Positions 11,868-62,821 of a stretch of 64,000 nt of DNA are shown here, piece after piece. The stretch is from Octopus sinensis. Lineage: Eukaryota. Within the stretch, counting starts at the first letter, position 1, and the number at the start of each line of letters is the position of its first letter. The stretch is taken from positions 114,514,001 to 114,578,000 of the forward strand of contig NC_042997.1 in assembly GCF_006345805.1 (NCBI RefSeq), given 5' to 3'. The notes beneath the pieces were generated by a model. That model was not told the origin of the DNA and made no database searches. It saw nothing but the letters and a program-made list of their open reading frames with translations. The position numbers and the translations under genes are program-made.

Positions 11868-11971
11868 TCATACGTTTCCTGAAACATTCTGATGCATTAA
11901 CGCATATAAGCGTGAGGCATTCATGTATTCCATCTTTATGCAGGTGTTATTGTTTGGGACGTACGCCACAT
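11868..11971 (-). CDS. DUF4430/transcobalamin-like domain exon X3, probably terminal ((D)VAYVPNNNTCIKMEYMNASRLYALMHQNVSGNV*)
   Basis: Strong acceptor ttttttgtttctag; only the phase-1 frame is open; continues X2 in frame; YVP motif matches the Y-x-P of the family; a phase-0 donor AAC|GTATGA at 11873 is also possible. Confidence 0.75.
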
Positions 11972-12149
11972 CTAGAAACAAAAAACAAAAATAAAAAGAC
12001 AGTTAAAATGTCTATATGTTGAAATTAAACTTTTAAAAAAAAATTTATTAATGATTAAATTCTTGTGATAAAATCCATGAACAAGGCTGGAAAGTTAATT
12101 TAGCAAACAAGATTTAAAGTTTAACAAACACAGATGTTAGAATCGATTT

Positions 12150-12850
12150 ATATGGCTATTTGTCTATAGCAGGTATTCTTCCTGGAGAAGTAAAGAAGAA
12201 CTTGTGACCTTGCTGAAGAAGTAAAGAAGAACTTGTGAGTAATGTGTTGCTGTTGACACCAAATCATGGTACTACAATGGCTGGAAGACCACAGGAGATG
12301 TATATACAACAGCTTGCAGAAGATGTTTCTTTGTTTGTTTGTTGAGCGAAGCGGTCTTTGTCCCAGAGCTTGCAAGATCACGCCTCAGGATTGTCTATAG
12401 TGGGAGAAGTCCGAAACATGGTCCTTTGCTATTCATAAGACCCGCAGAAGAGAAAGCAGGTCAACTCCTGACACCGAGAGCATCGACGGATGGATGAATG
12501 TGCATCCAGGCTCAGCAGTTGCATAAGAAGTCGGGGACAAGAAACAGGAAGAAAGAGTGAGAGAAAGTTGGAACGAAAGAGTACAACAGGGGTCGCCACC
12601 ACCCCCTGCCGGAGCCTCATGGAGCTTTAGGTGTTTTCGCTCAATAAACACACACAATGCCCAGTCTGGGAATTGAAACTGCGATCCTCCGACTGTGAGT
12701 TCACTGCCCTAACCACTGGGCCATTGCGCCTCCACGAGCAGAAGATGTTGGATTCCAAGTTGGAGACCTAAAAACACTAATGGAAGAATGGGGAGGATGG
12801 AGAGAGGTAGTCAAGTTGGCTTGGGCAATCTGCCTGGCTGGATGACGGCT
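12150..12850 (+). mobile_element. RTE-like LINE C-terminal relic interrupted by a family-C SINE (12410-12735, minus)
   Basis: WRSKEELV...VLLLTPNHG...GRPQEMYIQQLAED-type motif. Confidence 0.5.
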
Positions 12851-14737
12851 TTATAAAAAAAAAAGAAAAATGTTACCCTTCACCTATCTTAAGGTTATCG
12901 CCTAATATTTGAGTGCCTTTAACAAAAACCAATCTGATGTGAGATTTTAGGCCAGGTTTCTGAATTCCTTATATTTTGGTCAATGAGAATCAGAGGCTTT
13001 GAAAAAGGTTGTGCACACCGTCCTTCCTCTTTGATTAAGCCATTTAAAAACTGAGTGACTTTGTGAAATCTATTCCTTGGGGATGTGATTTTTTATCATC
13101 CAGGATTCTTTAAAATATTCTGTTTTATATAAACATAAAAAAACCAAAGAAACAAAAGAAAAGGACTATTCCTCTGTCTTCATAAAGTTATTTCTACTAT
13201 AAGCACAAGGCCTGAAATTTTGGAGAAGAGGAGCAGTCAATAATATCAACCCCAGCACTCAACTGGTACCCTGAAAGGATGGAAAGCAAAGTTGACCTTG
13301 GCAGGATTTGAACTCAGAATGTAAAGAGCTGGAAGAAAAGCTGCCGAACATTTTGTTTGGGATGATAACAATTCTGCCAACTCGCCACCATCCCCTGACT
13401 TTGTAAGATTAATTTTAAAGGGATTATATTTATTTCTTTACTGCCCACAGGGGACAAACAAGGACAGACAAGGGGATTAAGTCGATTATATTGACCCCAG
13501 TGATTAACTGGTACTTATTTAATCGACCCCCGAAAGGATGAAAGGCAAAGTTGACCTCAATTGTCTTCGTCTACTCCTCTGTTCATGGCTTTATAGTTTT
13601 GGCGTATTAACAACATTGTTTGTGGCTACATTGAAGATAATAAGAATTGGATAAATTTCTTATAATATGTCTTTTTGTTAAAGGCAGCAAGCTGGCAGAA
13701 ATGTTAGCATGCCGGGCGAAATGCTTAGTGGTATTTTGTCTGTCTTTATATTCTGAGTTCAAATTCTACTGTGGTCAACTTTGCCTTTCATCCTTTTGGG
13801 GTCAATAAATTAAGTACCAGTTGTGTACTAGGGACGATCTAATTGATTGGCCCCCCTCCCCAAAAACGCCTAGAGTAGAAAAGAATGTCTTTTGGTTTGA
13901 CAACATCTAAGAACAATATTTGAAGACTATTTTAAATATTTTATTATCTATTCTGTGTGAAAGGAAGAAGCACAAAGGCAGTATTAAATGAAATTTCACG
14001 ATCACATTTCCTCTTGATGCAGACTATATCTTGTATACAAATAGATGTTATGACTGCCATTGTGCAAGTTAGAGCTCTAAGTAGATTATCATTCTCCAAC
14101 CAACTTCCAGTACAGCGGTTAGTTTACCATTATACATTGTAGGGTTACTAGTTATGATATGTGGAGACACATGGACTAGTGGCTAGAGCAACAGACTCGC
14201 GGTCAAAGGATTGCGGGTTCGAATCTCAGACCGAGTGATGTATGTTTTTATGAGTGAAACACCTAAGCTCCACACAGCTCCGGCAAAAGGTAATGACAAA
14301 CTTCTTTTGACTTTTTCGCCACAACTTTCTCCCACTCATTCCTCCTGCATCTAGTGGCTCACGTGGGGAGCCTATACGCAAACAAAACCGGGAAACTGCC
14401 CCTTATGACTCAAGCATGGCTCGAGACGGAACAAGCAACAACAACAGTTATGATATACAGAACATATGAAGAGGAACATTAAGATAAACACAGGTATGAA
14501 TTATTTGTCCCTCTTTGTAGGTGTCATGCAAAAGGTACTGGTCCACATAAAAAGCACCCATGCTAGTGTCACATAAAAAGTGCTTTTTACACTCTGTAAG
14601 GTGGTTGGCATTAAGGAGGGCATCCAGCGGTAGGAGCCAGGCCAAAAGAGACTATGGAACCTGGTGCAGTTCCTGCCCTTAGCAGTTCCTGTCAAGCTGT
14701 CCAACACATGCCAGCATGGAAATGGATGTTGAATGCC

Positions 14738-14968
14738 AGTGGCAAGCTGGCAGAAATGTTAGCCCGCCAGGCGAAATACCTAGCGGTATTTCATCTGCTG
14801 TTACGTTCTGAGTTCAAATTCTGCCGAGGTCGACTTTGATTTCATCCTTTCGGGGTTGATAAATTAAATACCAGTTACGCACTGGGGTCGATGTAATCGA
14901 CTTAATCCGTGTGTCTGTCCTTGTTTGTCCCCTTTGTGTTTAGCCCCTTGTGGGTAGTAAAGAAATAG
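14738..14968 (+). mobile_element. SINE family B (ggcgagctggcagaa head); further copies near 3290, 6040, 9025, 13200, 13680, 15853, 28040, 36370, 57315
   Basis: Conserved gttctgagttcaaatt box B; 12-bp TSD ggatgttgaatg; inserted in an RTE tail. Confidence 0.85.
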
Positions 14969-16562
14969 GATGTTGAATGATGATGATGATGATGACATTG
15001 ATGGTGTTCCCCTAATGATCCATTGTGGTTAGGTTTCCTGATACATTTGGAATGTCCAATGATGTATTCCAATTAACAGCAATAGTGAAACATACACAGA
15101 GACAAATAATTCATATGTTTCTATCTTAATTTACCCTGTAAACTGTAATAAAGATATAAAATGATATTGAATGAGATATTTAAGCAGGCATGATTGTTGG
15201 AGTTAAGAAGTTTCTTTCACAACTCTGAGGTTTTAGGTTCAGTCCCACTAAATGGCATCTTTGGAGAATACCTTCTGCTATAAACCTTAAGTTGACTTGT
15301 GTTTACAATTTAGAAGACAGAAACTGTATGGGAGAAAAAACCAGAGTCATTGTTCCTGTTTTGAGGTGTAAATTTAATTGGTGACCTGGTTTAACAGCAG
15401 CACCACCTGGGCCTTAGATGAATTTAATGACGTTCACTCTGTTGTAAGTATGTAGATCAAGTCACCAGTTTAAGAGTAACTCCTCTCCTTCATTCTACCA
15501 GACTTGAAGGCCATGTCTAGGGCACTAAAGTTCCACTTCTGACTAACCACACACAAAAAAAAGCATATTGTAGAGTGTTGTCATCATCCTTGTTTTAATG
15601 TCCACTTTTCCATTCTTGTATGGGTCAGTTGGAATTCAGTGAAGCACATTTTCTATAGCTGGATGCCCTTCCTGTCACCAAACCGTACCTGTTTCCAAGT
15701 AAGGTAGCATTTCCCCATGACCAGACAATCATCTCGTGGAAGATTGCAAATGAACGACACCACCTGCATGACAGTGACACTCCTTTACAACTATCTTGTC
15801 TTGATGTTGAGACAAGGATGCATGCACATTCTTTCTCTCTTTCCTGTTAGAAAGGTGGTAAGCTGGCAGAAATGTTAGCACGCTGGGCAAAAGGCTAAGC
15901 GGTATTTCGTCTGCCGTTACGTTCTAAGTTCAAATTGCACCGAGGTTGACTTTGCCTTTCATCCTTTTGGGATCAATAAATTAAGTACCAGTTATGCACT
16001 GAGGTTGATGTAATCGACTTAATCCTTTTGTCTGTCCTTGTTTGTCTTCTCTATGTTTAGCCCCTTGTGGGTAGTAAAGAAATAAGAAAGAGAGAAAGAA
16101 TGTGCATTTTCTCTACAGCAAGACTCCTACATCTGTCTCCTTTGTCATACATTAATTTCTCAAAACCTGGTACAAAGCCGCTTCCCTCAATACTTCCCCA
16201 CGCCTCTGTTAAGGGGTCTTGTATTTGCAAGTTACTGGTGCCTTCATCAGTGTAGTGGTTGGTATTAAGAAGAGTATCCAGTCATAGAAGCCATGCCAAA
16301 ACAGATATTGGGGCTGAACATCCAATCCATATCAGCATGGAAAATGGATGTTCAATGGTGATGACGATGATCATAATATATACATGTACTTCTTTCAGAT
16401 TCCATTTACCAAATCCACTCCCAAGGCTTTTGCAGACCCAGGGCTATAGCAAAAGACACCTGTCCAAAGTGCCATATCATGGGACTGAACCTGAAAAAAC
16501 ATGGTTGCAAAAGTAAACTTCTTGACCACACAGCCATGGTGAGAATAAATATAAAACTTTAC

Positions 16563-16711
16563 CTAAATCTTTCTCTCCAGATAATGTATACAGCAGCCAA
16601 TATCTCGATGACATATGTGAGCCATATACTTCCTTAGTGTTACACAGTGATCGTACATATTCACCTACCTTTCCATCGGTTATGCGAGAATTTCTTTGAA
16701 AAGTAGTATAA
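16563..16711 (-). CDS. DUF4430/transcobalamin-like domain exon X2 ((N)YTTFQRNSRITDGKVGEYVRSLCNTKEVYGSHMSSRYWLLYTLSGEKDL)
   Basis: Acceptor ttttccttccag, donor G|GTAAAG; phase 2 in and phase 1 out fit X1 and X3; GEYVRSLCN and RYWLLY resemble the WGxxVSSINN and TYWQF motifs. Confidence 0.8.
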
Positions 16712-18887: not shown

Positions 18888-19017
18888 TTGAAACATTCAT
18901 TTCTGTCAGCCAAAATATTCAGAATACTTTTCAATGGTTGTTTGGATAATTTCAAATCATTCTTAATTATGGTATTATTTGGATGTTTAAGTTCTACTCT
19001 GACAGAAATTGTAGCAT
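18888..19017 (-). CDS. DUF4430/transcobalamin-like domain exon X1 (ATISVRVELKHPNNTIIKNDLKLSKQPLKSILNILADRNECF)
   Basis: Long polypyrimidine acceptor ..tctctacttcag, donor AA|GTATGT; phase 1 in, phase 2 out. Confidence 0.8.
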
Positions 19018-21203: not shown

Positions 21204-22440
21204 ATGAAATATCATTATGTCGATCATGGAATGATATGTCACAAACTGCGTGATCTTGGCATAGTTAGAAAATTGGGAGAATGGCTTCATGACTTTCTGA
21301 AGGATAGAAGTCAGGTGGTAGTAGCCAATGGGGCCACCTCCAATAACATGCAAATAGTGAGCGGTGTTCCACAAGGCACTGTTTTGGGACCACTGCTGTT
21401 CATAATAGCCCTCTCAGACATGCCCTCAGCCACGCAGAGATCCACAATCACAAGTTATGCAGATGATACAAAAGTTTCACAGGTAATACAGAACCCTGAA
21501 GACACCATGCACCTGCAATGTGAGCTGGACAAAATATACAAGTGGGCTGAAAAGAATAGCGTGCAGTTCACTGCTGAAAAGTTTCAAGCTTTATGCTATC
21601 AGCATGCAAAACTAAATGCAATGCCCAATAAATACACTGGACCTGGAGGGTTTGCAATCCCAGAGGCACAATCAGTGCGAGACCTGGGTATTTACATGAG
21701 TAATGATGCAACCTTTCATGTGCATGTTGCTAAATTGGCAATGAAATGTAGGCGGCCGACTGGATGGATTCTTAGAGCTTTTAGAACAAGAGACCAGGAA
21801 CCATGATGGTCCTCTGGAGGACACTTGTCTTAAGCCACTTTGACTATTGCTCTCAGCTATGGTCACCAACCAGTGTCAAATTAATCACAGAACTTGAGGC
21901 GATCCAATGAAGCTACACAAAGAAGATAGCCTCTGTGCAGCATATAAGCTATTGGGAAAGACTCAAGAGATTAAGACTCTATTCCTTAGAGCATAGGTGA
22001 GAAAGATATGCCATAATATACATCTGAAAGATTCTGGAAGGACTTGTCCCAAACCTTGGCATCGAGAGTTAAACAAATACTAGAACTGGGTGCCACTGCA
22101 TAGTGCCAAGGTCTCCAAATATGCCATCAAGATGTAGGACAAGATACTGTGATAGCCTGGGCTTCAGAGGTCCATAGCTCTTCAATATCCTCCTGAAGGA
22201 CCTGAGAGACCTTCATAGGGTGGATGCGGATGTCTTTAAAATAAAGCTGGACCTCTTCCTGTCAGGTGTCCCAGATGACCCAACTTCACGGCAGGAGGTG
22301 CAGATGAGGGCAGCTGCATCAAACTCTTTCATGCACCAAATGTTAATTGCTAAAAAGCATTCGTGAAGTAAAATCATGTAGCAACACCGAATGGCAGTGC
22401 CCCAGCATGGCCACAGCTTGTGAGCTGAAACTAGATAAAA
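21204..22440 (+). mobile_element. 5'-truncated CR1-type LINE (RT and 3' end)
   Basis: SGVPQGTVLGPLLF, SYADDTK, SVRDLGI motifs; stops downstream; homologous to 44600-45835. Confidence 0.9.
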
Positions 22441-22781: not shown

Positions 22782-22806
22782 TTGCTGCTGCTGGTGATGA
22801 TGCATT
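22782..22806 (-). CDS. Micro-exon E12, 25 nt (NASSPAAA + 1 nt)
   Basis: ttttccag acceptor, GTAAGT donor; phase 0 in matches E11, phase 1 out matches X1; the duplicate at 57919 differs only by synonymous CCA/CCT in this frame. Confidence 0.6.
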
Positions 22807-24493: not shown

Positions 24494-24708
24494 CGATTGA
24501 GTTGCATTATTTTTTACAATCTTAGATGGTCCCACTGCTTTTGATCTTAAAAGTTGTTTCAACCAACTGCTGTATAGTGGATTCTTTGGCATCGGGTTAT
24601 AAGGATAGGCTTTTTTTGTTGGATAAGATGGCTTCATAAAACTACCATAAGGATGTACATGATACTGATAAGCTTTAGGTATTGGTACATATGGCATAGG
24701 TGGTTGTT
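24494..24708 (-). CDS. Exon E11, 215 nt, Pro/Tyr/Lys-rich (QPPMPYVPIPKAYQYHVHPY...KNNATQS)
   Basis: Acceptor ctctgtttcag, donor TCG|GTATTT (alternative GCA|GTGAGG, same phase); open frame matches ORF 24443-24697. Confidence 0.75.
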
Positions 24709-27812: not shown

Positions 27813-28347
27813 GCTGCTGCTGTACTACTACTACTACTATTACTATTATTATGGTGGTAAGCTGGCAGAATCATTAGCACATCAGGCAAAATGCTAAGCG
27901 ATATTTCACCCGTCTTTATGTTCTGAGTTCAAATTCCACCAAGGTCAACTCGACCCCTCTTTCTTGCATGCAATTGTAAAATTGTAATTTGTCACATACT
28001 GACATCACTACAGATTTGAATCCTCTAAACATGAATATACATATTTCTTTACTACACACAAGGGGCTAAACACAGAGAGGACAAACAAGGACAGACAAAC
28101 GGATTAAGTTGATTATATCGACCCCAGTGCGTAACTGGTACTTATTTAATTGACCCCAAAAGGATGAAAGGCAAAGTCAACCTCGGCAGAATTTGAACTC
28201 AGAACGTAAAGACAGATGAAATACCCCTAAGCATTTCGCCCTGCATGCTAACATTTCAGCCAGCTCTCCTCTAAACATGAATATACAATGAAAGTAATGT
28301 ATTTCTACTATACTACTCAAAAATATTCACATAACCTGGATACTTAC

Positions 28348-28455
28348 TGTCAGGAGAGTCAGACTGCTCCGAAAAAGGAAAACTTGGATAACTGTATGGA
28401 TAAGGATACCTTGGTATCACTGGTAATGGATAAACTGGATATACCGGGGGGTATA
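28348..28455 (-). CDS. Exon E10, 108 nt ((V)YPPVYPVYPLPVIPRYPYPYSYPSFPFSEQSDSPD)
   Basis: tattgcag acceptor, A|GTAAGT donor (in-phase alternative donor 12 nt further at 28335); symmetric phase 1; strong YP periodicity. Confidence 0.8.
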
Positions 28456-30016: not shown

Positions 30017-32005
30017 AGAGGTATCAAGCTGCTGGATCAGGTGATGAAGGTTACGGAGAGGGTCATAAGCCCAACTAATTAGAGAGATAGTTAGTTTAGA
30101 TTAGATGCAGTTTGGGTTTGTGCCAGGGAAAAGTACTACTGATGCTATATTCCTGGTAAGGCAGCTGCAGGAGAAATACCTAGCCAAAGATAAGCCCCTG
30201 TACCTGGCTTTTGTTGACATGGAGAAATCCTTCGACAGGTTCCCCCGATCCCTTATCTGGTGGTCAATGAGGAAACTAGGGATAGATGAATGGTTAGTGA
30301 GAGCTGTGCGGGCCATGTATAGGGACGCTGCTAGTAGGGTGAGGGTTGGAAACGAGTACAGTGAAGAATTCCGGGTAGAGGTAGGGGTCCACCAAGGCTC
30401 AGTACTCAGCCCCCTCCTATTTATCATAGTCCTCCAGGCAATAACGGAGGAATTCAAGACAGGATGCCCTTGGGAGCTCCTCTATGCTGATGACCTTGCT
30501 CTAATTGCTGAGTCGCTATCAGAACTGGAGGAGAAGTTTCAGGTGTGGAAACAAGGATTAGAATCGAAGGGCCTCAGAGTCAATCTAGCTAAAACCAAAG
30601 TCGTAATCAGTAGGAAGGTAGACAAATCACAAACGCCTTCAGGTAGATGGCCCTGCTCAATCTGTAGAAAAGGTGTAGGTAGAAACTCTATAAGATGCAC
30701 CAAGTGTAAGCTATGGACACATAAGAGGTGCAGCAATGTCAAAGGAAGGCTAACTAGGAAGATGGTTTTTGTATGTGGCAGATGCTCAGGAACAATAAGC
30801 ACTGAAAATGCTCTGAGACCAACTTCCGTCACTTTCCAGGGAGAAAAACTAGAAATAGTTGATAGTTTCCGTTACCTAGGTGACCAAGTCAGCAGCGGGG
30901 GCGGATGTGCTGAAAGTGTAACTGCTAGAGTAAGAATAGCTTGGGCAAAGTTCAGAGAGCTCTTATTTCTGCTGGTGACAAAAGGCCTCTCGCACAGAGT
31001 GAAAGGCAGACTGTATGATGCGTATGAACGAAAAGCCATGCTACATGGCAGTGAAACATGGGCCGTGACTGCTGAGGATATGCATAAGCTCACAAGAAAT
31101 GAAGCCAGTATGCTCCGATGGATGTGTAATGTCAGTACTCATACTCGGCAGAGTGTAAGTACCTTGAGAGAAAAGCTGGACCTAAGAAGCATCAGTTGTG
31201 GTGTGCAAGAGAGACGTTTGCGCTGGTATGGTCATGTGGCGAGAATGGATGAAGATAGTTGTGTGAAAAAGTGCCACACCCTAGCTGTTGAGGGAACCTG
31301 CGGAAGAGGCAGACCCAGGAAAACCTGGGACGAGGTGGTGAAGCACGACCTTCGAACTTTAGGTCTCACTGAGGAAATGACTAGAGACCGAGACCTCTGG
31401 AAGTGTGCTGTGCGCGAGAAGACCCGGCAGGACAAGTGAGTCCATAACCCGTGGCCTTCTACATGGGATGTAGCCAGCCTACGTATGCATACCTTCCCTT
31501 CTTGGGACACAAAACTCTACTTGTGAAGACCTGTTGAGGCAAGTGAGGATCAGAATCGAAATCGATCAATGGAAATTGCAGATGTGTTACCAGTGCCGGT
31601 GGCATGTCGAAACTCTACTTGTGAAGACCTGTTGAGGCAAGTGAGGATCAGAATCGAAATCGATCAATGGAAATTGCAGATGTGTTACCAGTGCCGGTGG
31701 CATGTAAGAGAACCTTCCGTTTTGCGACCGTTGCCAGCACCGCCCCGACTGGCCTCGTGCCGATGGCACATAAAAAGTACCATCCGTTCGTGGCCGTTTG
31801 CCAGCTCTGTCTGGCACCTGTGCGGGTGGCACGTAAAAAGCACCCACTACACTCACGGAGTGGTTGGCGTTAGGAAGGGCATCCAGCCGTAGAAACACTG
31901 CCAGATTTGACTGGGCCTGATGAAGCCTTCTGGCTTCACAGACCCCAGTAGAACCGTCCAACCCATGCTAGCATGGAAAACGGACGCTAAACGATGATGA
32001 TGATG
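30017..32005 (+). mobile_element. 5'-truncated RTE-clade LINE: RT ORF 30105-31439, 3' UTR, (GAT)n tail
   Basis: LAFVDMEKSFD, GVHQGSVLSPLLF, YADD, RRLRWYGHVARM, GRGRPRKTW motifs; C4HC3 finger at 30654-30785. Confidence 0.95.
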
Positions 32006-33390: not shown

Positions 33391-33435
33391 CTGGTGTGGG
33401 TATCCATTCAGTTTTACTTTTGGGAAAGTATGATC
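33391..33435 (-). CDS. Micro-exon E9, 45 nt ((G)SYFPKSKTEWIPTP)
   Basis: ttattttacag acceptor, G|GTCTGT donor, symmetric phase 1, EW motif shared with other A-type exons. Confidence 0.75.
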
Positions 33436-36688: not shown

Positions 36689-36730
36689 CTGGCCACAGTC
36701 TCCATTCTGGACGTGGTTGTGGGTTAATTG
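36689..36730 (-). CDS. Micro-exon E8, 42 nt ((A)INPQPRPEWRLWP)
   Basis: T10-cccccag acceptor, G|GTTTGT donor, symmetric phase 1, PEW motif. Confidence 0.75.
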
Positions 36731-40110: not shown

Positions 40111-40152
40111 CTATTCTTGGTCTCCATTCTAGTTCACTTTTCAGATATCTCC
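40111..40152 (-). CDS. Micro-exon E7, 42 nt ((G)RYLKSELEWRPRI)
   Basis: atatctttag acceptor, G|GTATGT donor, symmetric phase 1, EWRP motif. Confidence 0.75.
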
Positions 40153-40553: not shown

Positions 40554-40556
<3 letters not shown>

Positions 40557-40592
<36 letters not shown>

Positions 40593-40888
40593 ATGTATGT
40601 ATGTATATATGTATGTATGTATGTATGTATATATGTATGTATGTATATATGTATGTATGTATATATATATGTATGTATGTATATATGTATGTATGCATGT
40701 ATGTATGTATGTATATATATATATGCATATATATATATGTATGTGTGTATATATATATGTATATATATATATGTGTATGTATGTATATATGTATGTATGT
40801 ATATATATATGTATATATATATGTATGTATGTATATATATATGTATGTATATATATATGTATATATATATATATATGTATATATATAT
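40557..40888. repeat. Compound (GT)n/(TATG)n/(TA)n microsatellite
   Basis: Seen directly. Confidence 0.95.
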
Positions 40889-41649
40889 AATAAAATATGG
40901 TTATCCGTAATAATGAAGGGTGAAATTAATTAATTTGGAAAAATTATCAATTACACCAAGTAGTCTTCGGCATGTAAAAGCCTCATTCGAGGAAAATTTA
41001 AGTAATACTAAGCAATAAGGGTTTAGCAACGAGTTGCCTTACCACATACCGAATTTAGAAATAGCAGTCAAAGGGTTATAGCTATTTCTTCTACTAAAAG
41101 TAGAAGAAATAGCTATAACCCTTTGACTGCTATTTCTAAATTCGGTATGTGGTAAGGCAACTCGTTGCTAAACCCTTATTGCTTTGTATATATATATATG
41201 TATATATATATAAGTATATATATATATATGTATGTATGTATATATGTATGTATATATGTATGTATGTATATATGTATGTATGTATATATATATGTATGTA
41301 TATATATATGTATATATATATATATATGTATGTATGTATGTATATATGTATGTATATATATGTATGTATGTATATATGTATGTATATATATATGTATGTG
41401 TATATATATATACAAATTAATTAATTTCACCCTTCATTATTACGGATAACCATATTTTATCTCAGTAGATGACCACAGCATCTTGTTTTGGCTACACGCG
41501 GGTGGGAAGGGGCTGTTGACACAATCGTTTCATTCACAAATTGAATTCGGTGATACCAGTTGCGGATTCTAGCTCGCTCTGATACTGAGTTGAGTTGGTG
41601 CCTTCTGGTATCTCAAAATTCAATATATAATCATTTATGATTATAGTAT

Positions 41650-42548: not shown

Positions 42549-42553
42549 ATATG

Positions 42554-42584
<31 letters not shown>

Positions 42585-42670
42585 GTATGTATATATATAT
42601 ATGTATATATGTATGTATATATATGTATGTGTATATATATGTATGTATATATATATGTATGTATGTATAT

Positions 42671-42704
<34 letters not shown>

Positions 42705-42750
42705 GTATATATATATGTATGTATGTATATATATATATGTATGTATGTAT

Positions 42751-42791
<41 letters not shown>

Positions 42792-42824
42792 TGTATGTAT
42801 GTATATATATATATGTATGTATGT

Positions 42825-42858
<34 letters not shown>

Positions 42859-42906
42859 GTATATATATATATATGTATGTATGTATATATATATATGTAT
42901 GTATGT

Positions 42907-42954
<48 letters not shown>

Positions 42955-42973
42955 GTATATATATATATGTATG

Positions 42974-43006
<33 letters not shown>

Positions 43007-43008
43007 GT

Positions 43009-43056
<48 letters not shown>

Positions 43057-43369
43057 GTATATATATATATGTATGTATATATGTATGTATGTATATATAT
43101 ATGTATATATATGTATGTATATATGTATGTATGTATATATATATGTATGTATATATGTATGTATATATATATATATGTATGTATATATATATATGTATGT
43201 ATATATATATGTATGTATATATATATGTATGTATGTATGTATATATATATATGTATGTATGTATATATGTATGTATGTATATAATATATATGTATGTATG
43301 TATATATGTATGTATGTATATATGTATGTATGTATATATATATGTATGTATGTATGTATATATATATGT

Positions 43370-43400
<31 letters not shown>

Positions 43401-43555
43401 TGTATATGTATGTATATATATATATGTATGTATATATATATGTATATATATATGTATGTATGTATATATATATATATATGTATGTATGTGTATGTATATA
43501 TGTATGTATGTATATATGTATGTATGTATATATGTATGTATATATGTATGTATGT

Positions 43556-43596
<41 letters not shown>

Positions 43597-43916
43597 TATA
43601 TGTATGTATATATATATATATATGTATGTATATATATATATGTATGTATATATATATATGTATGTATATATATATATATATGTATGTATGTATATATATG
43701 TATGTATGTATATGTATGTATGTATGTATGTATATATATGTATGTATGTATATGTATGTTAGTATGTATGTATATATATGTATGTATGTATATGTATGTA
43801 TGTATATATATGTATGTATGTATATGTATGTATGTATATATATTATATATGTATGTATGTATATATATATATATAGTATGTATGTATATGTATGTATATA
43901 TAATATATATATATAT

Positions 43917-43948
<32 letters not shown>

Positions 43949-43960
43949 ATATAATATAAT
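42549..43960. repeat. ~1.4-kb (TATG)n/(TA)n microsatellite
   Basis: Seen directly; explains the YI/MYV ORFs. Confidence 0.97.
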
Positions 43961-44094
43961 TAGAAAAATCCACCAATTAAATTACACCATCTAGAAAATT
44001 ACATATAATAGAAATATTGAATATAAAATAACAATAAAGATGGTGTATTTAATTGTTCATTTGAATTGATAAAGGGTGGTTTTTTTCTAATTTT

Positions 44095-44146
44095 TATATA
44101 TATATGTATGAATATATATATTTATGTATATATATGTATGTATGTA

Positions 44147-44182
<36 letters not shown>

Positions 44183-44204
44183 TATATATATATATGTATA
44201 TATG

Positions 44205-44266
<62 letters not shown>

Positions 44267-44364
44267 TGTATGTATGTATGTGTATGTATGTATGTATGTA
44301 TGTATGTATATGTATGTATGTATGTATGTATATCTATATGTATGTATGTATGTATATATGTATG

Positions 44365-44396
<32 letters not shown>

Positions 44397-44600
44397 TGTA
44401 TGTATGTATATATATATATGTATGTATGTATTTATATATGTATGTATGTATGTATTTATATATGTATGTATGTATGTATATATATATGTATGTATGTATG
44501 TATATATGTATGTATGTATGTATATATGTATGTATGTATGTATATATGTATGTATGTATGTATATATATATGTATGTATGTATATATATATGTATGTATA
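44095..44600. repeat. (TATG)n/(TA)n microsatellite at the CR1 3' end
   Basis: Seen directly. Confidence 0.95.
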
Positions 44601-47600
44601 AAATCCTTAAAATCCTTAAAAATGTTTTAGCCCGAAGGCCGCGGCCATGCTGGGGCACCACCGCTGAATGAGCTACACTAGTTTGTGAATCCACCTCTGA
44701 TACGTGGCACTTGATCAACAAGGGAGGTCGATGCTGCTGCCCGCATCCGTGTCTCCTGTCGTGGGGTAGGTTCATCTGGGACTCCCAACAAGAAGAGATC
44801 CAGTTTAGTTTTAAAGAAACCCACATCCACACCATGTAAGTCTCTCAGGCATTTAGGGAGGATGTTAAAGAGCTGTGGTCCTCTGAAACCCAAGCTGTTG
44901 CAGTATCTGGACCTGTATTTTGATGGTGATGTTGGAATCCTTGGCACCATGCAGCGGCGCCCCATTCTGCGGTTGGAGTAACTTTGAATGCCAAAGTTTG
45001 GGACAAGACCCTCCAGGATTTTCCAGATGTATATCACTGCATATCTCTCCCGCCTCCGCTCCAGGGAGAAGAGGTTTAATACCTTCAGTCTTTCCCAGTA
45101 GCTGACATTTTGCATTGAGACTATTTTCTTTGTGTAGCTTCTCTGAGTTGCTTCGAGTTCTGCTGTTTGTTTTATATTGTGTGGTGACCAAAGTTGGGAG
45201 CAGTAGTCCAAGCGGCTGAGGACAAATGTTTTCCATAGGACCATCAGTGTCTCCTTCTCTCTTGTTCTGAAAGTTCGGAGAATCCATCCAGCTAGCCATC
45301 TGCATTTTATCACCAGATTAGCAATATGCATTTGGAAAGATGCATCATTGCTCATGTCAATGCCCAGGTCACGCACTGATTTTGACTCAGGGATTGCAAT
45401 TCTTCCTGGGCCAGTGTATCCAGTCTTCACGTCATTTACCTTTGTGTGCCAGTAGCGCAGGGCCTGGAACTTACCTGCATTAAACTGCATGTTGTTGTCC
45501 TCACCCCACCTGTATATTGTGTCCAGCTCATGTTGCAGATGCGCAATATTTTCAGGGTTTTGTATTGCGTGGGAGACTTTTGTGTCATCTGCATAGCTAG
45601 CAAGGGTGGTCATCGTAGCAACTGAAGGCATGTCTGAAAGGGCCACTATGAACATCAGTGGCCCCAAGACAGTGCCCTGTGGGACACCGCTTGTTATTTG
45701 CGTTTCCCTGGAGGTGGCTCCATTGCTCACAACTGCCTGTTTTCTGTCTTTTAGGAAGTTGTGCAGCCACTCTCCAAGTTTCCCGCCTATGCCGAGACCA
45801 CGCAGTTTGTGACAGATCATACCATGCAAAGTCAAGATATATTACATCCACATTTGAGCCATTTAGTAGCTGTTTCAACACCCAGTCATAGTGTTGCAGG
45901 AGCTGTGTTAGGCAGCCTCTACCTGGTCGAAATCCATGCTGGGTGTCAGACAGTAAGTCATTTTCTTCAAGGAACATGATTAGTTTCTTACGGACTATTC
46001 GTTCCATGACTTTGCTGATGTGTGAGGTCAGAGAGATAGGCCTATAATTTTTAGCATCTGCTCTGCTACCTCCCTTATGGATAGGGCATATTACCCCCTC
46101 TTTCAGTTTGACTGGGAGCTTACCACTTGCAAGAAAGCTCTGAAAAAGAAGCTGCAGCGGTTTTGCAAGGGCTCGTTTGCACGATTTGAGAAGGATCGCT
46201 GGGAATCCATCAGGTCCAGCAGCTGAGTTTGTGTCAATCTCATCAATGGCTAGTGTGATATCATCTTCTTCGATGTTGATGTACTCAATTTTTGTCTCTT
46301 TGGCCGCTGGTAAAGTGGCAAAGAATTCTTCTGGGTTGTTTACTTGCCTGTGTCCTAGAGGTGTAGTGAACACACTTTGGAACTGTTCGTTCAGTATTTC
46401 ACTTATCCTCGTGGGATTTCCTGTGAGAGAGCCATCTTTTTGGAAGAGAGGTCCTATTCTCTGGTGCACTGTGGCTGTCTCTTTGGCAAACTTAAAGAAA
46501 GCTTTAGGGTTTGATTTTATATTTTCTATTACCCAAGCTTCTTTATCTGCTCTCTCCTTTTCATGGGACTGATGTAGACTTTTCTCAGTTTCCATTAGCA
46601 TTCTTTCGAGCCGAGACTTCTCATCACTTTTGGTGTGCTTGCTCAGGCGGTTTGCAATCCTTGTCCGTCATCTCATAAGAATCCTCCTTTCTCTAGGGAT
46701 CCTGTTTTTGTTCTTGTGTGTGCTGGCCCTGCACATTGGGACATATTTGTCACATATGGCTTGTATTATGGACATGAAGTGTTTGTGTTTCATGTTTATG
46801 TCTGGTGTGGAGAGACATTCAGGCCAATCCTGTTTGAGGATCTCTTTCTCAATCGACTTCCAGTTGGCTTTATGAAAGTTTAAGTTGGAGAGATGGTGGG
46901 TGCTTCGTATAGGCTGTGTGTCTGCGGGGGCTTTTGTTCCATACATAGACAGCTCTATTATGTTGTGATCCGAGATCATTGTCGGCATCACATTAACATG
47001 GATAATCCATATTGTTGTGAAGCAGAGATCCAGTATATTATCTGCCCTTGTTGGTTGCAGAACTATTTGCTCCATGAAAGAGGCATTTGTGAGATGGAGC
47101 AGGGACTCCACCTGTGCCTGCTGATGGTGTGTCATCCCTGGGAGCATCTGCCCCCCAGGCCATTCCACATTGGGGAGGTTAAAGTCACCCATGAAGAATA
47201 CACTGTTGTTGCTGTTCAAGGTTGGTGAGGACTTCTCCTATTTTTGTTAGGCAGTCTTCAAACATGCCTGAGTGTTTTGGGGCATCTGGTGGGCGATATG
47301 TAGTGCATATGACGATATTCAGTTGTCTTATGTGTACAATTTGAGTTTCACATACTGAGTTTGAATATGACAGCAGGACCTGGGGCGTGAGGTCATCTCG
47401 GATGTACATTGCAACTCCACCATGGCTCCTCCCTTTTCTATCTGTGCGTATGACTGCATATTGCGGCATGTGTATTTCTGCATCACCTATATCGGGTTCA
47501 GATGCGTTTCTGTGAGTGCCATGCATATAGCTTGATTGCATGTCACAAGGTCTCTCAGGAATGAAATTTTCTTTTTACAGTTTCCGCGCAGCAGCCCTCC

Positions 47601-50172: not shown

Positions 50173-50749
50173 TATATATATATGTATATATATATGTATA
50201 TATATATGTATGTATGTATGTATATATATATGTATGTATGTATGTATATATGTATGTATGTATATATATATGTATGTATGTATGTATGTATATATATATG
50301 TATGTATGTATGTATATATATAGGTACGTATGTATGTATATATATATGTATGTATGTATGTATATATATGTATGTATGTATATATATATATGTATGTATG
50401 TATATATATATATGTATGTATGTATATATATATATGTATGTATGTATATATATATATGTATGTATGTATATATATATATGTATGTATGTATATATATATA
50501 TGTATGTATGTATGTATGTATATATATATATATGTATGTATGTATATATATATATGTATGTATGTATATATATATGTATGTATGTATGTATATATATATG
50601 TATGTATGTATGTATATATATATGTATGTATGTATGTATATATATGTATGTATGTATATATATATGTATGTATGTATATATATATATATGTATGTATGTA
50701 TATATATATGTATGTATGTATATATATATAATATATATATGTATGTATG

Positions 50750-50780
<31 letters not shown>

Positions 50781-51121
50781 ATATGTATGTATATATGTAT
50801 GTATGTATATATATATATATGTATGTATGTATATATATATATATATGTATGTATATTATATATATGTAGTATGTATATATATATATGATGTATGTATGTA
50901 TATGTATGTATTATATATATATATGTATGTATGTATATATATATATGTATGTATGTATATATATATATGTATGTATATATATATATTATGTATGTATATA
51001 TATATATGTATGTATATATATTATATGTATGTATGTATGTATAATATATATTGTATGTATGTATGTATGTATATATATGTATGTATGTATATATATATAT
51101 ATATTATATATATATATATAT

Positions 51122-51152
<31 letters not shown>
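50173..51152. repeat. ~1-kb (TATG)n/(TA)n microsatellite
   Basis: Seen directly. Confidence 0.97.
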
Positions 51153-51153
<1 letters not shown>

Positions 51154-51950: not shown

Positions 51951-51992
51951 CTTTCAACGAATTCTCTGGTATCGGAAATGTTGGTTTGTATT
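51951..51992 (-). CDS. Micro-exon E6, 42 nt ((E)YKPTFPIPENSLK)
   Basis: aacttttcag acceptor, G|GTAAAA donor, symmetric phase 1, EYKP motif shared with E2 and E4. Confidence 0.8.
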
Positions 51993-56056: not shown

Positions 56057-56101
56057 CTGGTTTAGGTTTCCATTCTGGTTGACTTCCTGGAGTCAAGATC
56101 C
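56057..56101 (-). CDS. Micro-exon E5, 45 nt ((G)ILTPGSQPEWKPKP)
   Basis: ttttcaatctag acceptor, G|GTACGG donor; identical to E1 and E3. Confidence 0.8.
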
Positions 56102-57536
56102 CTAGATTGAAAACAATAAAATCTTGTAAATATATGTGGAATGGTAGTATTCCATATGTTCAAAGAACATATCCAAAAGAATGTCATGTCATCCAATTAG
56201 CATATATATATATATATATTATATATATATATGTACATACACACACACACACATATATATATTTACACATACACACACACATTTCATTGCCCATTCTCTC
56301 CTAAATTCTAAATTAAGTTATGAAGCAGTCATCACTAATGATTGTATCAGAGAGTAGACCTTGGTGCATGACACAGTTCTCCCACCTCATCAGACCCATC
56401 AAACCACTCAACCCATGCCAGCATGGTGATGATGATGATGATGATAATATTTAAGGGTGTCTGTCTTCAATAGGATTTGGAGTAGTTACTGCAGAAATAC
56501 CACTAAATTACTGCTATAGAGATATAAGTTGCATTGGGTGTCTGTGCATATCACTCTCTCTCTATCATGATCATCATCATTCAACGTCCATTGTCCATTC
56601 TGGCATGGGTTGGACTGTTTAACTGGGGCAGGCAAGATGGAATGCTGCACCAGACTCCAGTCTGATTTGGTATGCTTTTCCACGGCTTGATGCCTTTCCT
56701 AATGCCAACCACTCTGAGAATGTAACGGGTGCTTTTATGCGCCACTGGCACTGGTGCCATTTGCATGACACCAGTATCTGCTACAACTGCGATTTTGCTC
56801 AGCTTCATGGGTCTTCTCAAGCACGACAATGCCAAATGTTTCGGTCATGAGGCTCAATGATCAAAAGGAACTCAGCTACTTTATACATAGATAGATAAAG
56901 AGAGAGAGAGAGAGGGAAAGAGAGACTGGAAGAGGGAGGTTTAGTGGAATAAACATGAGAAATAGAACTCAATACGTGAGTTTACAGTAATCCCTCGCCA
57001 TATCATGGTTCACCTATTGCATTTCACCTTTCGCAGTTTATTATTTAAGCTTACATCGATTCCTCCGTGGTGTTGTTTCACATTTATAATAAAATAAATA
57101 TACACAAATTATAAAAATAATGAAAGAAAATATTCAGTACAGTACTGTTTCTACTTCGCAGATTTTCACCTGTCGTGGGGGGGGGGAGTTGAACGTAACA
57201 CCTGTGATAGTTAAGGGATTACTATATTCTTTTTTATTGGCTGAAAAGTTACAAGATTTCCTGTATAGCACTTACAAAACTTTAAACACACACACACACA
57301 CACATTGATATTCTTTTCTACTCTAGGCACAAGGCCTGAAATTTTAGGGAGGGGTCCAGTCAATTAGATTGACTCCGAAAGGATGAAAGGCAAAGTCAAC
57401 CTCGGCAGAATTTGAACTCAGAATGTAAAGACAAACTAAATACTGCTAAGCATTTCGCCTGGAATTGCTAACATTTCTGCCAGCTTGCCACCTTAATACA
57501 CATAGTGATATTATAAACACTATTGTGTATATATAT

Positions 57537-58082: not shown

Positions 58083-58121
58083 CTATTCTCATCCACCAAG
58101 GTGGCAGCAGAGGTTTATATT
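58083..58121 (-). CDS. Micro-exon E4, 39 nt ((E)YKPLLPPWWMRI)
   Basis: T-run-cag acceptor, G|GTAAAG donor, symmetric phase 1. Confidence 0.8.
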
Positions 58122-59156: not shown

Positions 59157-59187
<31 letters not shown>

Positions 59188-59321: not shown

Positions 59322-59366
59322 CTGGTTTAGGTTTCCATTCTGGTTGACTTCCTGGAGTCAAGATCC
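59322..59366 (-). CDS. Micro-exon E3, 45 nt ((G)ILTPGSQPEWKPKP)
   Basis: ttttcactctag acceptor, G|GTATGG donor. Confidence 0.8.
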
Positions 59367-60259: not shown

Positions 60260-60335
<76 letters not shown>

Positions 60336-60942
60336 CCATCATCAGATTCAGCATCATCAATTAACATCAATCAATGATCCATTCTGGTATGGGTTAAACA
60401 GCTTGATAGTAAATGATGTGTCGAAGGACTGCATCATACCCCAGAGTCTACTTTGGCATGGTTTCTACAACTGGAAGCAAATGGCTGCATTTTGTCGTAA
60501 CACCATCACTAATGAAGTCACCATGCACCTTGCAATATATATAATCAAATACGTGCACACCGGGAGAACTACATTGCATGGAAACAATTGTAATGATGAA
60601 AGATTAATGTCCGACTGTCCCCCTTCTTGTTGAATCCAATTTTTTCAATTACCTATTCACATTCGACAGACGCCCAAACATAAAACTGAAAGTATGTATA
60701 ATACTACAAGTGGATAGAATAGAGTAAATCTGAAGGTGGATGAGCTTTACTCTGTACTCTGCTACGTTCTTTACAGAATATACCATAAATGTATGTATGT
60801 ATTATGATGATATACACATCATATGCATACAGACATGCATACACAAACACACACACACACACAGATATGTTATAAACACTATTGTGCATGTACAAGTGTA
60901 ATTGAAATTGTGCAAAGATATAGATGTCAAAGACTGGTTTAC

Positions 60943-60981
60943 CTGTTTTCATCCACCAAGGTGGCAGTACAGGTTTATACT
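60943..60981 (-). CDS. Micro-exon E2, 39 nt ((E)YKPVLPPWWMKT)
   Basis: T-run-cag acceptor, G|GTAAAC donor. Confidence 0.8.
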
Positions 60982-62079
60982 CTGAAAAAAAAAAAAAAAA
61001 CAGAAAATTGCAAAATTATTTAATTTGCTTGACCATATCATATTGTTGTAGTTTCCATAATTTAACTTATTTATCAATTAAATATATTGATTGTCTCAGA
61101 AATTCATTGAGCTCAATTGGCATCCTGGCATTCTTTTCTTTCTTCCTCTCCTGTGCCTTTTTAAGTGTTAGTGTAACTAATGTTTATCAGGTCTAAACTT
61201 AACTGATGTGGAGGCACATGGCCTAGTGGTCAAAACAAAAGAATTACAGTCGAGGGATCTTGGGTTCAAATCTCAGACCAGGTGATGTGTGTGTTTATGA
61301 GCAAAATATGCAGCTCTAGCAGAAGGTAATGGTGAACTTCTGCTGATTCTTTCGCTACAATTTACTCTCACTCTTTCCTCCTGCATTTAGCAGCTCACCT
61401 ATGATGGACTGGCGTCTCGTCCATCTGGAGAACCTATATGCTATTGAAACCAGGAAACTGGCCTTATGTGCCAGGCATACAACAATCTTAATGGATACCT
61501 CTTAGAGCCTCCTCACTCATAGGTTAAGGTCCTAGATATAAAAATATTTTTCCTTGGCAAAAATGAATATTTTCTCTATATATAATACTTTCATAAAACG
61601 CTGCGCAGTCACAAAGCTTATCCTTTGTAGTCATTTTTGAAAGATAATTTCACATCTAAAAATGTACATCTAATGATTGTAGGTCAAAGTAATTTACATG
61701 AAACTATTAGTTATATAATTTGCTTTTGTTCCTGTGATTGATATAAAAACTAAATATTTTATTGAGTGCCTATGAAAAATAACCGATCATGTAGATTATT
61801 GGCATGGCTCTGTGGTTGAGAATTTTGCTTCCCTTCCACAAGATTTAGAGTTCATCTTGACTACTGCATGACACCTTGAGCAAATGTCTTCTACTGTAAC
61901 CCTGGGCCATCATAAGCCTTATGAGTGACTTTGGTAGAAGGTAAGTGGGAAAATTGAACAAAGCATGTTGTATATTTGTCTGTCTGTCTATTAATCTATC
62001 TATCTACCTATCTAACAACAAGTAATATGTATGAAGAAAATCATACGTATAGATATATATTGATATACACATGGACTCA

Positions 62080-62586
62080 CACAAAACACGGAGGCCTACA
62101 TCAATTGCTCGGAGGAGGCAGTGCTGCCCTGGGTCAAGAGCGTGGCTGCTAGAAGACACTATGTCTGCACCATGCCACACAAGCATGAGAACCTGGCCAT
62201 GGCTGTCAGACAAATTCTGTGACCACATCACTCCTAACATCTGGCCTACTAACTCCCCAGATTGCAACCCCCTTGATTATTATGTGTGGGGCGCAGTTGA
62301 GTGAGAGACCAACAAAACTCTTTGTAACACCAAAGATGAACTGAAGATAAGGATTATGGCAGCATTGACCAACTTAAACAAGGAGACTGTCCAAAGGTAT
62401 TGCTGGAGATTCCGAAGTCGTCTGGAGGCCGTGGTTGAAGCCAATGGTGATTTTATTGAATAAATTTACTCTTTAGTATTTCAAGATATTTCTATGTAAT
62501 TTTGGGAAATATATCGGTTAAAATGAGCTGTCAGTGTTATTTTCGTTTTTGTGTAATTTAGACAATAATTTATTCACCTCACCCTG

Positions 62587-62592
<6 letters not shown>
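62080..62592 (+). mobile_element. Tc1/mariner (maT-like) transposase 3' relic with terminal repeat
   Basis: SAPCHTS..WPTNSPDCNPLDYYVWGAVE; ends ..cacctcaccctgTA. Confidence 0.75.
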
Positions 62593-62620
<28 letters not shown>

Positions 62621-62776
62621 TGTATGTATGTATGTATGTATGTATGTATGATTGTATGTATGTATGTATGTATGTATGTACATATGTATGTATGTATTGT
62701 TTTGTTTTGTTTGAGGCTGTATTTGTTTGTATAGCTTAGTGTATATGCATGTTAAACACCATTCATAAATTCATAC

Positions 62777-62821
62777 CTGGTTTAGGTTTCCATTCTGGTT
62801 GACTTCCTGGAGTCAAGATCC
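62777..62821 (-). CDS. Micro-exon E1, 45 nt (ILTPGSQPEWKPKP); most 5' exon visible
   Basis: ttttcactctag acceptor, G|GTATGA donor; no start codon, so the gene begins beyond 64000. Confidence 0.8.

Follow-up and report, generated by a model that had tools for sequence, protein, structure and literature searches.

In tropoelastin, a secreted, disordered and Pro-rich matrix protein, every exon border is of phase 1:1, and small exons of two alternating classes, set in long introns, can drop out as cassettes with the frame intact; the replicated exon blocks vary by species, and the protein has a distinct C-terminal end (PMC12554196). The schistosome micro-exon genes (MEGs) carry most of their coding sequence (CDS) in very small symmetric exons and are described as restricted to platyhelminths, and VAL-6 has been discussed as a possible composite of a folded-domain gene and a MEG-like block (PMC4350168); a preprint gives MEG exons as 3-81 bp (bioRxiv 10.1101/2023.06.21.545858). 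In this study, we analysed a window of 64,000 nucleotides of Octopus sinensis (the whole stretch G000:C1:114514001-114578000 within the 2.72-Gb assembly), extended by 18 kb on the right with positions past 64000 continuing the window numbering, in which a minus-strand gene spans approximately 64 kb, the window covering its 3' four-fifths. The gene joins a run of small symmetric exons, encoding two alternating classes of repeat module (A and B), to a putative DUF4430/transcobalamin beta-type domain; by analogy, its closest known design appears to be tropoelastin, nearer than the schistosome MEGs.

The likeness to tropoelastin lies in a predicted secreted, Pro-rich and very likely disordered product, in exons 2-16, which are all of phase 1-1, and in the A/B alternation of exons 3-12. 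The two are not homologous in sequence and differ in composition (G/V/A/P in tropoelastin, W/Y/K/E/P in octopus); moreover, unlike in tropoelastin, octopus exons 17-21 are not of phase 1-1 and the end of the protein is a folded, DUF4430-like domain. With the schistosome MEGs the gene shares a signal peptide, runs of short symmetric exons, long introns, cassette variants (predicted in octopus), fast evolution and a narrow lineage, and its arrangement is similar to that discussed for VAL-6. A sequence-only reading of the window had recognised in it the design of the schistosome MEGs, which stands as far as the symmetric small exons and the 5'-encoded signal peptide (as read from its residues) are concerned. 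Membership of the MEGs is not supported, as they are described as platyhelminth-restricted (PMC4350168) and carry most of their CDS in very small symmetric exons, whereas in the octopus gene the small exons (39-63 nt) account for 630 of 1401 coding nt (45%) and exons 16-21 are conventional or asymmetric. Homology to MEGs was not found either, the only significant relatives being Octopus proteins and DUF4430 proteins. In contrast to MEGs, the small octopus exons are tandem duplicates of one A/B pair, and the predicted isoforms change the repeat number only.

The observation itself was correct and its interpretation is partly supported, since there is a single gene with a predicted secreted product, its cassettes are in frame and its end is DUF4430-like. 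RefSeq had listed the gene and its isoforms before, and cassettes of phase 1-1 are a textbook principle in tropoelastin and MEGs. New are the cryptic domain, predicted to be of the transcobalamin beta type, the complete layout of 21 exons, 15 of them in succession being of phase 1-1, the ongoing duplication and homogenisation of exons, the near-neutral evolution, the restriction to Octopus and the correction of the split O. bimaculoides models.

Two other repetitive proteins deserve comparison. Mussel foot protein 1 (Mfp-1) is a basic, secreted protein in which Pro, Lys and aromatic residues abound, with short tandem repeats built on a decapeptide containing Tyr/DOPA (3,4-dihydroxyphenylalanine), and it has no DUF4430 domain. 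The likeness of the octopus protein to it is compositional only, the octopus unit being a Trp-rich 28-aa module spread over two exons; there was no Pfam or other family match, and neither the decapeptide repeat nor homology to Mfp-1 was found. The name 'adhesive plaque matrix protein' was given by automatic annotation at NCBI because of this shared composition. Isoform X2 (P0007, XP_036360011.1) is named 'histone-lysine N-methyltransferase 2D-like', while the other isoforms are 'adhesive plaque matrix protein-like'. Both RefSeq names stem from similarity between Pro-rich stretches of low complexity and say nothing about function. The PEVK region of titin consists of Pro/Glu/Val/Lys-rich modules of approximately 28 residues, each encoded by its own small exon, and acts as a disordered spring whose length depends on differential splicing. 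The octopus A+B unit also measures 28 aa and contains PEWKPKP/PEVKPKP; titin is intracellular, sarcomeric and non-homologous, whereas the octopus unit is Trp-rich and split over two exons.

Gene structure and repeat modules

Fifteen minus-strand exons, from 62821 to 11868, join to exactly 1115 nt and a 370-residue open frame ending at TGA (11870-11868). With borders set base by base, all 15 are flanked by AG acceptors and GT donors, most are preceded by a polypyrimidine tract, and all the peptides quoted by the sequence-only reading for this splicing (1115 nt, approximately 370 aa, no stop) lie on the minus strand where it had placed them. Its further statement, that the first ten visible exons are of phase 1-1 with lengths divisible by three, was confirmed base by base (45, 39, 45, 39, 45, 42, 42, 42, 45 and 108 nt). 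That reading had advised a rightward extension in search of a signal peptide, and six further coding exons were indeed found to the right of the window, among them, 12 kb away, the exon with which a signal-peptide-like sequence begins. The full model contains 21 coding exons with a CDS of 1401 nt and a protein of 466 aa, whose translation is letter for letter RefSeq XP_029643944.1, 'adhesive plaque matrix protein-like isoform X1' of O. sinensis; a search of 5.8 billion protein clusters returned this O. sinensis protein together with a truncated O. bimaculoides orthologue. The exons, all on the minus strand, are as follows:

Exon 1, 75687-75648, minus: 40 nt, MSKPCFALVALLA
Exon 2, 73651-73589, minus: 63 nt, phase 1-1, VIALSEVQGSQKYLGHPWYLN
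Exon 3, from 72135, minus: 45 nt, phase 1-1, A-type, GILPRSSGPAWDVHQ
Exon 4, from 69828, minus: 48 nt, phase 1-1, loosely B-type, MNKPKRPLSQLWWKSK
Exon 5, from 68170, minus: 51 nt, phase 1-1, A-type, GLFPPQGEPEVKPKPKP
Exon 6, from 66135, minus: 39 nt, phase 1-1, B-type, EYNPVLPPWWMKK
Exon 7 (A1), 62777..62821, minus: 45 nt, phase 1-1, GILTPGSQPEWKPKP, the same sequence as exons 9 and 11
Exon 8 (B1), 60943..60981, minus: 39 nt, phase 1-1, EYKPVLPPWWMKT
Exon 9 (A2), 59322..59366, minus: 45 nt, phase 1-1, GILTPGSQPEWKPKP
Exon 10 (B2), 58083..58121, minus: 39 nt, phase 1-1, EYKPLLPPWWMRI
Exon 11 (A3), 56057..56101, minus: 45 nt, phase 1-1, GILTPGSQPEWKPKP, singly skipped in isoforms X2 and X8
Exon 12 (B3), 51951..51992, minus: 42 nt, phase 1-1, EYKPTFPIPENSLK; O. 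bimaculoides orthologue at L009 986-1027
Exon 13, 40111..40152, minus: 42 nt, phase 1-1, GRYLKSELEWRPRI; O. bimaculoides orthologue of 45 nt
Exon 14, 36689..36730, minus: 42 nt, phase 1-1, AINPQPRPEWRLWP, with the sole WxxW motif
Exon 15, 33391..33435, minus: 45 nt, phase 1-1, GSYFPKSKTEWIPTP; O. bimaculoides orthologue at L009 7220-7264
Exon 16, 28348..28455, minus: 108 nt, phase 1-1, Tyr/Pro-rich, beginning with VYPPVYPVYPLPVIPRYPYPYSYP
Exon 17, 24494..24708, minus: 215 nt, phase 1-0, Tyr/Pro/Lys-rich, with NATQS at its end
Exon 18, 22782..22806, minus: 25 nt, phase 0-1, linker NASSPAAA, which carries an N-glycosylation sequon
Exon 19, 18888..19017, minus: 130 nt, phase 1-2, first third of the putative DUF4430/transcobalamin-beta-like domain
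Exon 20, 16563..16711, minus: 149 nt, phase 2-1, middle of the putative DUF4430-like domain, with the motifs G-EYV-SLC and RYWLLY
Exon 21, 11868..11971, minus: 104 nt, phase 1-0, end of the putative DUF4430-like domain, with TGA at 11870-11868

The 15 consecutive exons 2-16 are followed by exons 17-21 with phases 1-0, 0-1, 1-2, 2-1 and 1-0, and the introns between the 14 small exons (2-15) measure 1.2-11.8 kb. Compatibility of frame alone is weak evidence for such a model, because 1392 segments on the 82-kb minus strand meet the same formal rule (AG, 30-60 nt open in the matching phase, GT). The evidence for the gene model is instead the recurrence of the motifs, the O. bimaculoides exons that keep splice sites and frame, and the exact RefSeq identity. 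That a Pro/Trp/Tyr region and the C-terminal domain belong to one gene, as had been proposed, is borne out by all nine O. sinensis RefSeq models, which join them, and by the O. bimaculoides protein P0002, in which the Tyr/Pro part is joined to the C-terminal domain. The DNA of the A and B exons and the protein each have one locus only in the 2.72-Gb genome, which makes the gene single-copy; a gene-family reading was rejected, since neither the A/B exons nor the whole protein have copies elsewhere in the genome. The gene is real, present in RefSeq and uncharacterised: no literature was found on it (under its accessions or that of the O. bimaculoides gene, LOC106871108), on an octopus adhesive plaque matrix protein, or on cephalopod micro-exon genes. 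The architecture had been called unrecognised, which overstated its novelty, as the gene was annotated already, with isoforms. For the gene structure, homology and architecture taken together, our confidence is very high.

The product begins with MSKPCFALVALLAVIALSEVQG, followed by SQ, which is encoded by exons 1-2 and in which n-, h- and c-regions can be read, with small residues at -3/-1; the protein is therefore predicted to be secreted by way of a cleavable signal peptide, in agreement with what had been proposed from the visible exons. Behind it lie a Pro/Lys/Trp/Glu-rich repeat region of approximately 200 residues, which is very likely disordered, a Tyr/Pro-rich region of approximately 115 residues and a C-terminal globular domain of approximately 125 aa. 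Each repeat exon encodes a module of 13-17 aa. The A-type consensus is G-x-x-x-P-x-S-x-P-E-W-[KRI]-P-x-x (exons 3, 5, 7, 9, 11, 13 and 15, loosely 14), while the B-type consensus is E-Y-[KN]-P-x-L-P-P-W-W-M-x-x (exons 6, 8, 10 and, in diverged form, 12, with exon 4 as a loose match), and the repeat region was found, as claimed earlier, to contain no Cys and to fall into these two motif classes (G....S.PEW[KRI]P.. and EYKP..PPWWM..). The mature protein is basic (isoelectric point approximately 9.8; P 16%, K 10%, Y 7%), with P 21%, K 12% and W 8% in the micro-exon region, Y 13% and P 22% in exons 16-17, and eight N-x-S/T sequons within the last 140 aa.

A reading of the product as a Trp/Pro-rich antimicrobial or neuropeptide-like precursor was dropped, as no regular processing sites, dibasic or for amidation, occur at the exon borders. 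The idea that a third, unpaired Cys forms an intermolecular disulfide was also given up, since this position is Tyr in O. bimaculoides.

Predicted cassette splicing, exon duplication and evolutionary rate

The RefSeq isoforms X1-X9 measure 466, 451, 438 (five models), 423 and 410 aa, and all nine decompose exactly into whole exons, with the variation confined to exons 6-11. The skipping events are as follows:

X2: exon 11 skipped
X4: exons 6 and 7 skipped
X3 and X7: one A/B pair among exons 9-11 skipped
X5 and X6: one A/B pair among exons 7-9 skipped
X8: two skipping events combined
X9: two skipping events combined

As the small exons are symmetric throughout, the loss of any cassette leaves the frame intact. 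The sequence-only reading had concluded from this that any subset could be skipped, for which the frame indeed allows and with which the exact whole-exon combinations agree, but support is limited to exons 6-11 and some of these isoforms are perhaps artefacts of read placement. The isoforms are Gnomon predictions, and exons 7, 9 and 11 are identical, so that ambiguous placement of reads could account for X3/X7, X5/X6 and, in X9, for the part that covers exons 9-11; both points weigh against cassette splicing as annotated. X3 and X7, as well as X5 and X6, are distinct transcripts with the same protein within each pair, and arbitrary choice among identical A exons gives just such pairs, therefore part of the isoform list may be artefact.

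Carried further, this would mean that the gene is real while its combinatorial splicing is largely an annotation artefact and the protein has essentially one form, which we regard as possible, albeit doubtful. The identity of exons 7, 9 and 11 (45 of 45 positions, with flanks 91-95% identical), the same-protein pairs, the confinement of all isoform variation to the duplicated block and the visibly imperfect annotation of O. bimaculoides, which is split in two models with one reading into an intron, all agree with it. It is opposed by two junctions of unique sequence, namely exon 10 to exon 12 (WWMRI followed by EYKPTF), which X2 and X8 need, and exon 5 to exon 8, needed by X4 and X9; being unique, they cannot be produced by ambiguous placement of reads on the A exons. 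In addition, a B, an A and a B exon together measure 39 + 45 + 39 = 123 nt, which fits one 150-nt read, and the linkages could have been directly observed.

Apart from how the transcripts are spliced, the array arose through repeated tandem duplication of the A/B exon pair (GILTPGSQPEWKPKP / EYKPVLPPWWMKT), the duplication of the youngest units (exons 6-11) including intron sequence. The A1/A2 flanks are 95% identical over 323 bp, and the corresponding values are 92.5% for A1/A3, 90.6% for A2/A3, 89% over 821 bp for B0/B1 and 84% for B1/B2. As the A exons are identical while their flanks have diverged by 5-9%, gene conversion or purifying selection may be supposed.

The orthologue in O. bimaculoides was located as follows:

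L012 3001-19531 and L009 10001-23472 (CM046601.1): O. bimaculoides orthologue, annotated as two genes

One of the two models, P0025 (173 aa), runs into an intron and ends in GMYTKF and a stop, while P0002 (223 aa) is the remainder, and the intron between them contains a run of 1840 N. The orthologous exons keep frame and splice sites and, when joined, give one continuous open reading frame (ORF), which is why we consider the split into two genes an annotation problem next to the 1.84-kb assembly gap; the frame ends 6 codons before that of O. sinensis. In the gap-free stretch from B0 to B3, O. bimaculoides has B0-A-B-A'-B3 where O. sinensis has B0-A-B-A-B-A-B3, i.e., one A/B pair fewer. The A' exon (GIINSKVKSGWKPKP, L012 15955-15999) differs from exon 11 of O. 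sinensis at 10 of 46 aligned positions, with flanks 96% identical, a contrast that hints either at a burst of change on the O. bimaculoides side or at gene conversion in O. sinensis. Since both the copy number and A' differ between close species, the number and content of exons are changing. An orthologue of exon 14 was not found in O. bimaculoides, where the 1840-N run sits in that interval, and for this reason the idea of exon 14 as a lineage-specific exon was withdrawn.

For the same two species, the ratios of nonsynonymous to synonymous change (dN/dS, Nei-Gojobori method) are 0.80 for the whole CDS, 0.72 for the micro-exons, 1.26 for the Tyr/Pro region and 0.52 for the C-terminal domain, which is the most constrained part of the protein. 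Exons are 91.0% and colinear whole introns 92.5% identical (p=0.06). Exons had seemed to change faster than introns when 200-nt flanks were used, and whole-intron colinear alignment reduced the difference to these values; with p=0.06, near-neutral evolution is claimed and positive selection is not. Frame, splice sites and composition are kept despite the intron-like rate, and the pattern would fit a disordered protein constrained in composition, or a mix of positive and purifying selection, which two species cannot separate. That the CDS changes about as fast as the introns also weighs against the matrix or adhesive explanation given below, as a weakly constrained gene would show the same. Among 1.84 billion representative proteins, no relative was found outside Octopus except remote DUF4430 proteins.

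This rate and this narrow distribution bear on a second explanation, in which the gene would be an analogue of the MEGs, with combinatorial skipping of micro-exons giving diverse secreted variants under diversifying selection, e.g., at a prey, pathogen, symbiont or gamete interface. The signal peptide, the long run of symmetric small exons with kb-scale introns and the nine predicted isoforms agree with it, as do the occurrence in Octopus only and the fast evolution (micro-exons, Tyr/Pro region, and exons conserved no better than introns), given that MEGs of the same design evolve at an accelerated pace (PMC4350168). However, the predicted variation does not extend beyond the youngest A/B units, three in number and nearly identical, therefore the isoforms differ in length and not in sequence repertoire; the small exons make up less than half of the CDS and none is shorter than 39 nt; a dN/dS near 1 in two species cannot part positive selection from relaxed constraint; and there is no homology to the MEG families, described as platyhelminth-restricted (PMC4350168). 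It seems to us unlikely that this explanation is correct.

The C-terminal domain and the proposed function

The C-terminal end had been called DUF4430-like, and this was upheld by three approaches, a phmmer search, profile comparison and Foldseek, while Pfam itself was silent; for that reason the assignment rests on an intermediate sequence. In the phmmer search of 1.84 billion representatives, the octopus domain matches a protein, P0010 (E=4e-7), that Pfam resolves into five tandem DUF4430 domains (E=6e-66). The octopus domain and the P0010 repeats have in common the motifs C-[FY]-N, G-x-[FY]-[VI]-x-S-[IL]-C, YW-x-[FL]-Y and, at the end, [RE]-Y-[ML], and two Cys are invariant in their alignment; compared with the repeats, the octopus domain carries insertions of 6 and 3 residues. 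A profile built from the two octopus sequences alone matches the P0010 repeats with hhalign at E=6e-6 and a probability of 85%, and the joint profile matches the beta-domains in the PDB of intrinsic factor (E=8.5e-4) and of the transcobalamins TC1 and TC2 (range 8.5e-4 to 0.012).

P0010 itself is encoded by an intronless gene of 611 aa on a TARA metagenome scaffold (L010 1213-3048) of marine origin. It contains many N-glycosylation sequons and a hydrophobic C-terminal tail, and it is the nearest relative of the octopus domain after the O. bimaculoides orthologue.

A single-sequence AlphaFold2 (AF2) model had a pLDDT of 44 and was unusable, therefore the alignment-based AF2 model was used (pLDDT 70, pTM 0.66, i.e., moderate confidence). 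With this model, all 19 Foldseek matches in the PDB at E <= 0.001 are either the bacterial DUF4430 structure 3u7z or beta-domains of transcobalamin (TC), haptocorrin or intrinsic factor (E about 4e-5, probability 1.00, TMq 0.53-0.65), and the next tier, generic beta-grasp (ubiquitin-like) folds, has E approximately 100 times worse. Three observations weigh against the assignment: Pfam gave no DUF4430 match at E<=10 with either the spliced protein or the C-terminal domain, a six-frame search of the whole genome with PF14478 returned nothing at the locus, and the AF2 input alignment included genuine DUF4430 repeats, by which the model may have been biased toward that fold. Taken together, profile and model predict that the C-terminal domain is a divergent member of the DUF4430/transcobalamin beta-domain fold.

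With the beta-domains of TC, intrinsic factor and haptocorrin the octopus domain thus shares the fold and a remote sequence relationship, while the octopus protein is without an alpha-domain. It is known that the isolated human TC beta-domain retains cobalamin unaided, to the point that its removal took extensive washing, whereas high-affinity binding by TC requires both domains (PMC5599065), and that teleosts have short Tcn-like proteins in which a DUF4430 domain is present and the rest of a typical TCN is missing (PMC4350170). Given that the TC beta-domain binds alone and that such short proteins exist, ligand binding is a legitimate hypothesis for the octopus domain.

To hypothesize along this line, the protein would bind a corrinoid (vitamin B12-type) or another small ligand, with the beta-domain working as carrier, scavenger or storage, and the disordered repeat being no more than a spacer, a tether or a tail for docking to a receptor. 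The fold, which is that of the beta-domains of cobalamin binders, the cobalamin held by the isolated human TC beta-domain (PMC5599065) and the short DUF4430-bearing Tcn-like proteins of teleosts (PMC4350170) are in keeping with such a role; so are the position of the Tyr of the octopus V-G-E-Y, which aligns with the bulky Tyr362 of TCN2 (PMC4350170; inferred from the hidden Markov model alignment to intrinsic factor), and the constraint on the C-terminal domain (dN/dS 0.52). On the other hand, the alpha-domain, which TC needs for high affinity (PMC5599065), is missing, and the similarity lies under Pfam detection. DUF4430 is defined as a domain without known function, and many of its members are bacterial (Lactococcus and Methanosarcina in the control genomes), therefore the fold does not imply B12 binding. 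A carrier role would also leave unexplained the Trp/Pro/Lys repeat of variable copy number, which is most of the protein, and on the whole we find it improbable.

The reading that we favour, tentatively and by analogy, is that the product acts as an extracellular matrix component or as an adhesive or coacervating one. The repeat would be a spacer rich in cation-pi partners (Lys/Arg with Trp/Tyr), whose length would depend, as it does in tropoelastin, on the splicing of cassettes and the number of exon copies, and the C-terminal beta-domain would be its ligand-binding or partner-docking end. It weighs against this role that the RefSeq name rests on compositional similarity only. The explanation as a whole, structure and matrix or adhesive function combined, we hold to be reasonably probable.

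A stronger version is that octopuses independently evolved a MEG/elastin-like gene, young, confined to their lineage and fast-evolving, in whose secreted product a beta-domain of the cobalamin-binder type would be tethered to a Trp/Pro/Lys spacer, with the length and content of the spacer set combinatorially by symmetric micro-exon cassettes and by continuing exon duplication and gene conversion, and whose variants would be functionally distinct, as a tunable adhesive or matrix protein or as an interface protein under diversifying selection; this we consider quite doubtful. If the cassette splicing is real and functional, the gene would be a clear case, outside flatworms and vertebrates, of one small symmetric exon per peptide module. 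The three identical exons of O. sinensis set against the diverged copy of O. bimaculoides offer a natural experiment in exon duplication, and for biomaterials research, where wet adhesion and coacervation are of interest, a basic, Trp/Tyr/Lys/Pro-rich octopus protein that is putatively secreted makes a plausible candidate. For annotation, the locus indicates that Pfam can miss a DUF4430/transcobalamin-beta domain and that RefSeq names of low-complexity proteins carry no functional information.

Intron contents and 3' flank

The introns contain mobile-element remains and simple repeats. Fragments of reverse transcriptase of the long interspersed nuclear element (LINE) type lie within the 11.8-kb intron 12, outside the coding gene, and RVT_1 ORF fragments are also found inside introns at 30105-31439 (+) and 21204-21806 (+); one RVT_1 fragment has a PHD-finger match under the Pfam cut-off. 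Intron 12 also holds (TA)n/(TATG)n microsatellite blocks of up to 2 kb, and these arrays are the reason for a GC fraction of 0.20-0.28 and a strong GC skew. A repeat of approximately 165 bp, resembling a short interspersed nuclear element (SINE), occurs at 28100-28300 and at least 11 other sites on both strands, in introns and in the 3' flank, with copies 78-89% identical. The positions are as follows:

44678..46667, minus: LINE-type reverse-transcriptase fragments in intron 12
42549-44600: (TA)n/(TATG)n microsatellite block, intron 12
50173-51153: (TA)n/(TATG)n microsatellite block, intron 12
40556-40874: (TA)n/(TATG)n microsatellite block, intron 12
41185-41409: (TA)n/(TATG)n microsatellite block, intron 12
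3343-3506: SINE-like repeat, example
13690-13843: SINE-like repeat, example
14745-14909: SINE-like repeat, example
15861-16025: SINE-like repeat, example
57364-57485: SINE-like repeat, example

In window positions 1-11867, the ORFs 4909-5463 (+) and 6547-7185 (-) have no Pfam match and no neighbouring gene was identified. Downstream of the stop, candidate poly(A) signals (ATTAAA/AATAAA) are present at 11816, 11774 and 11345.

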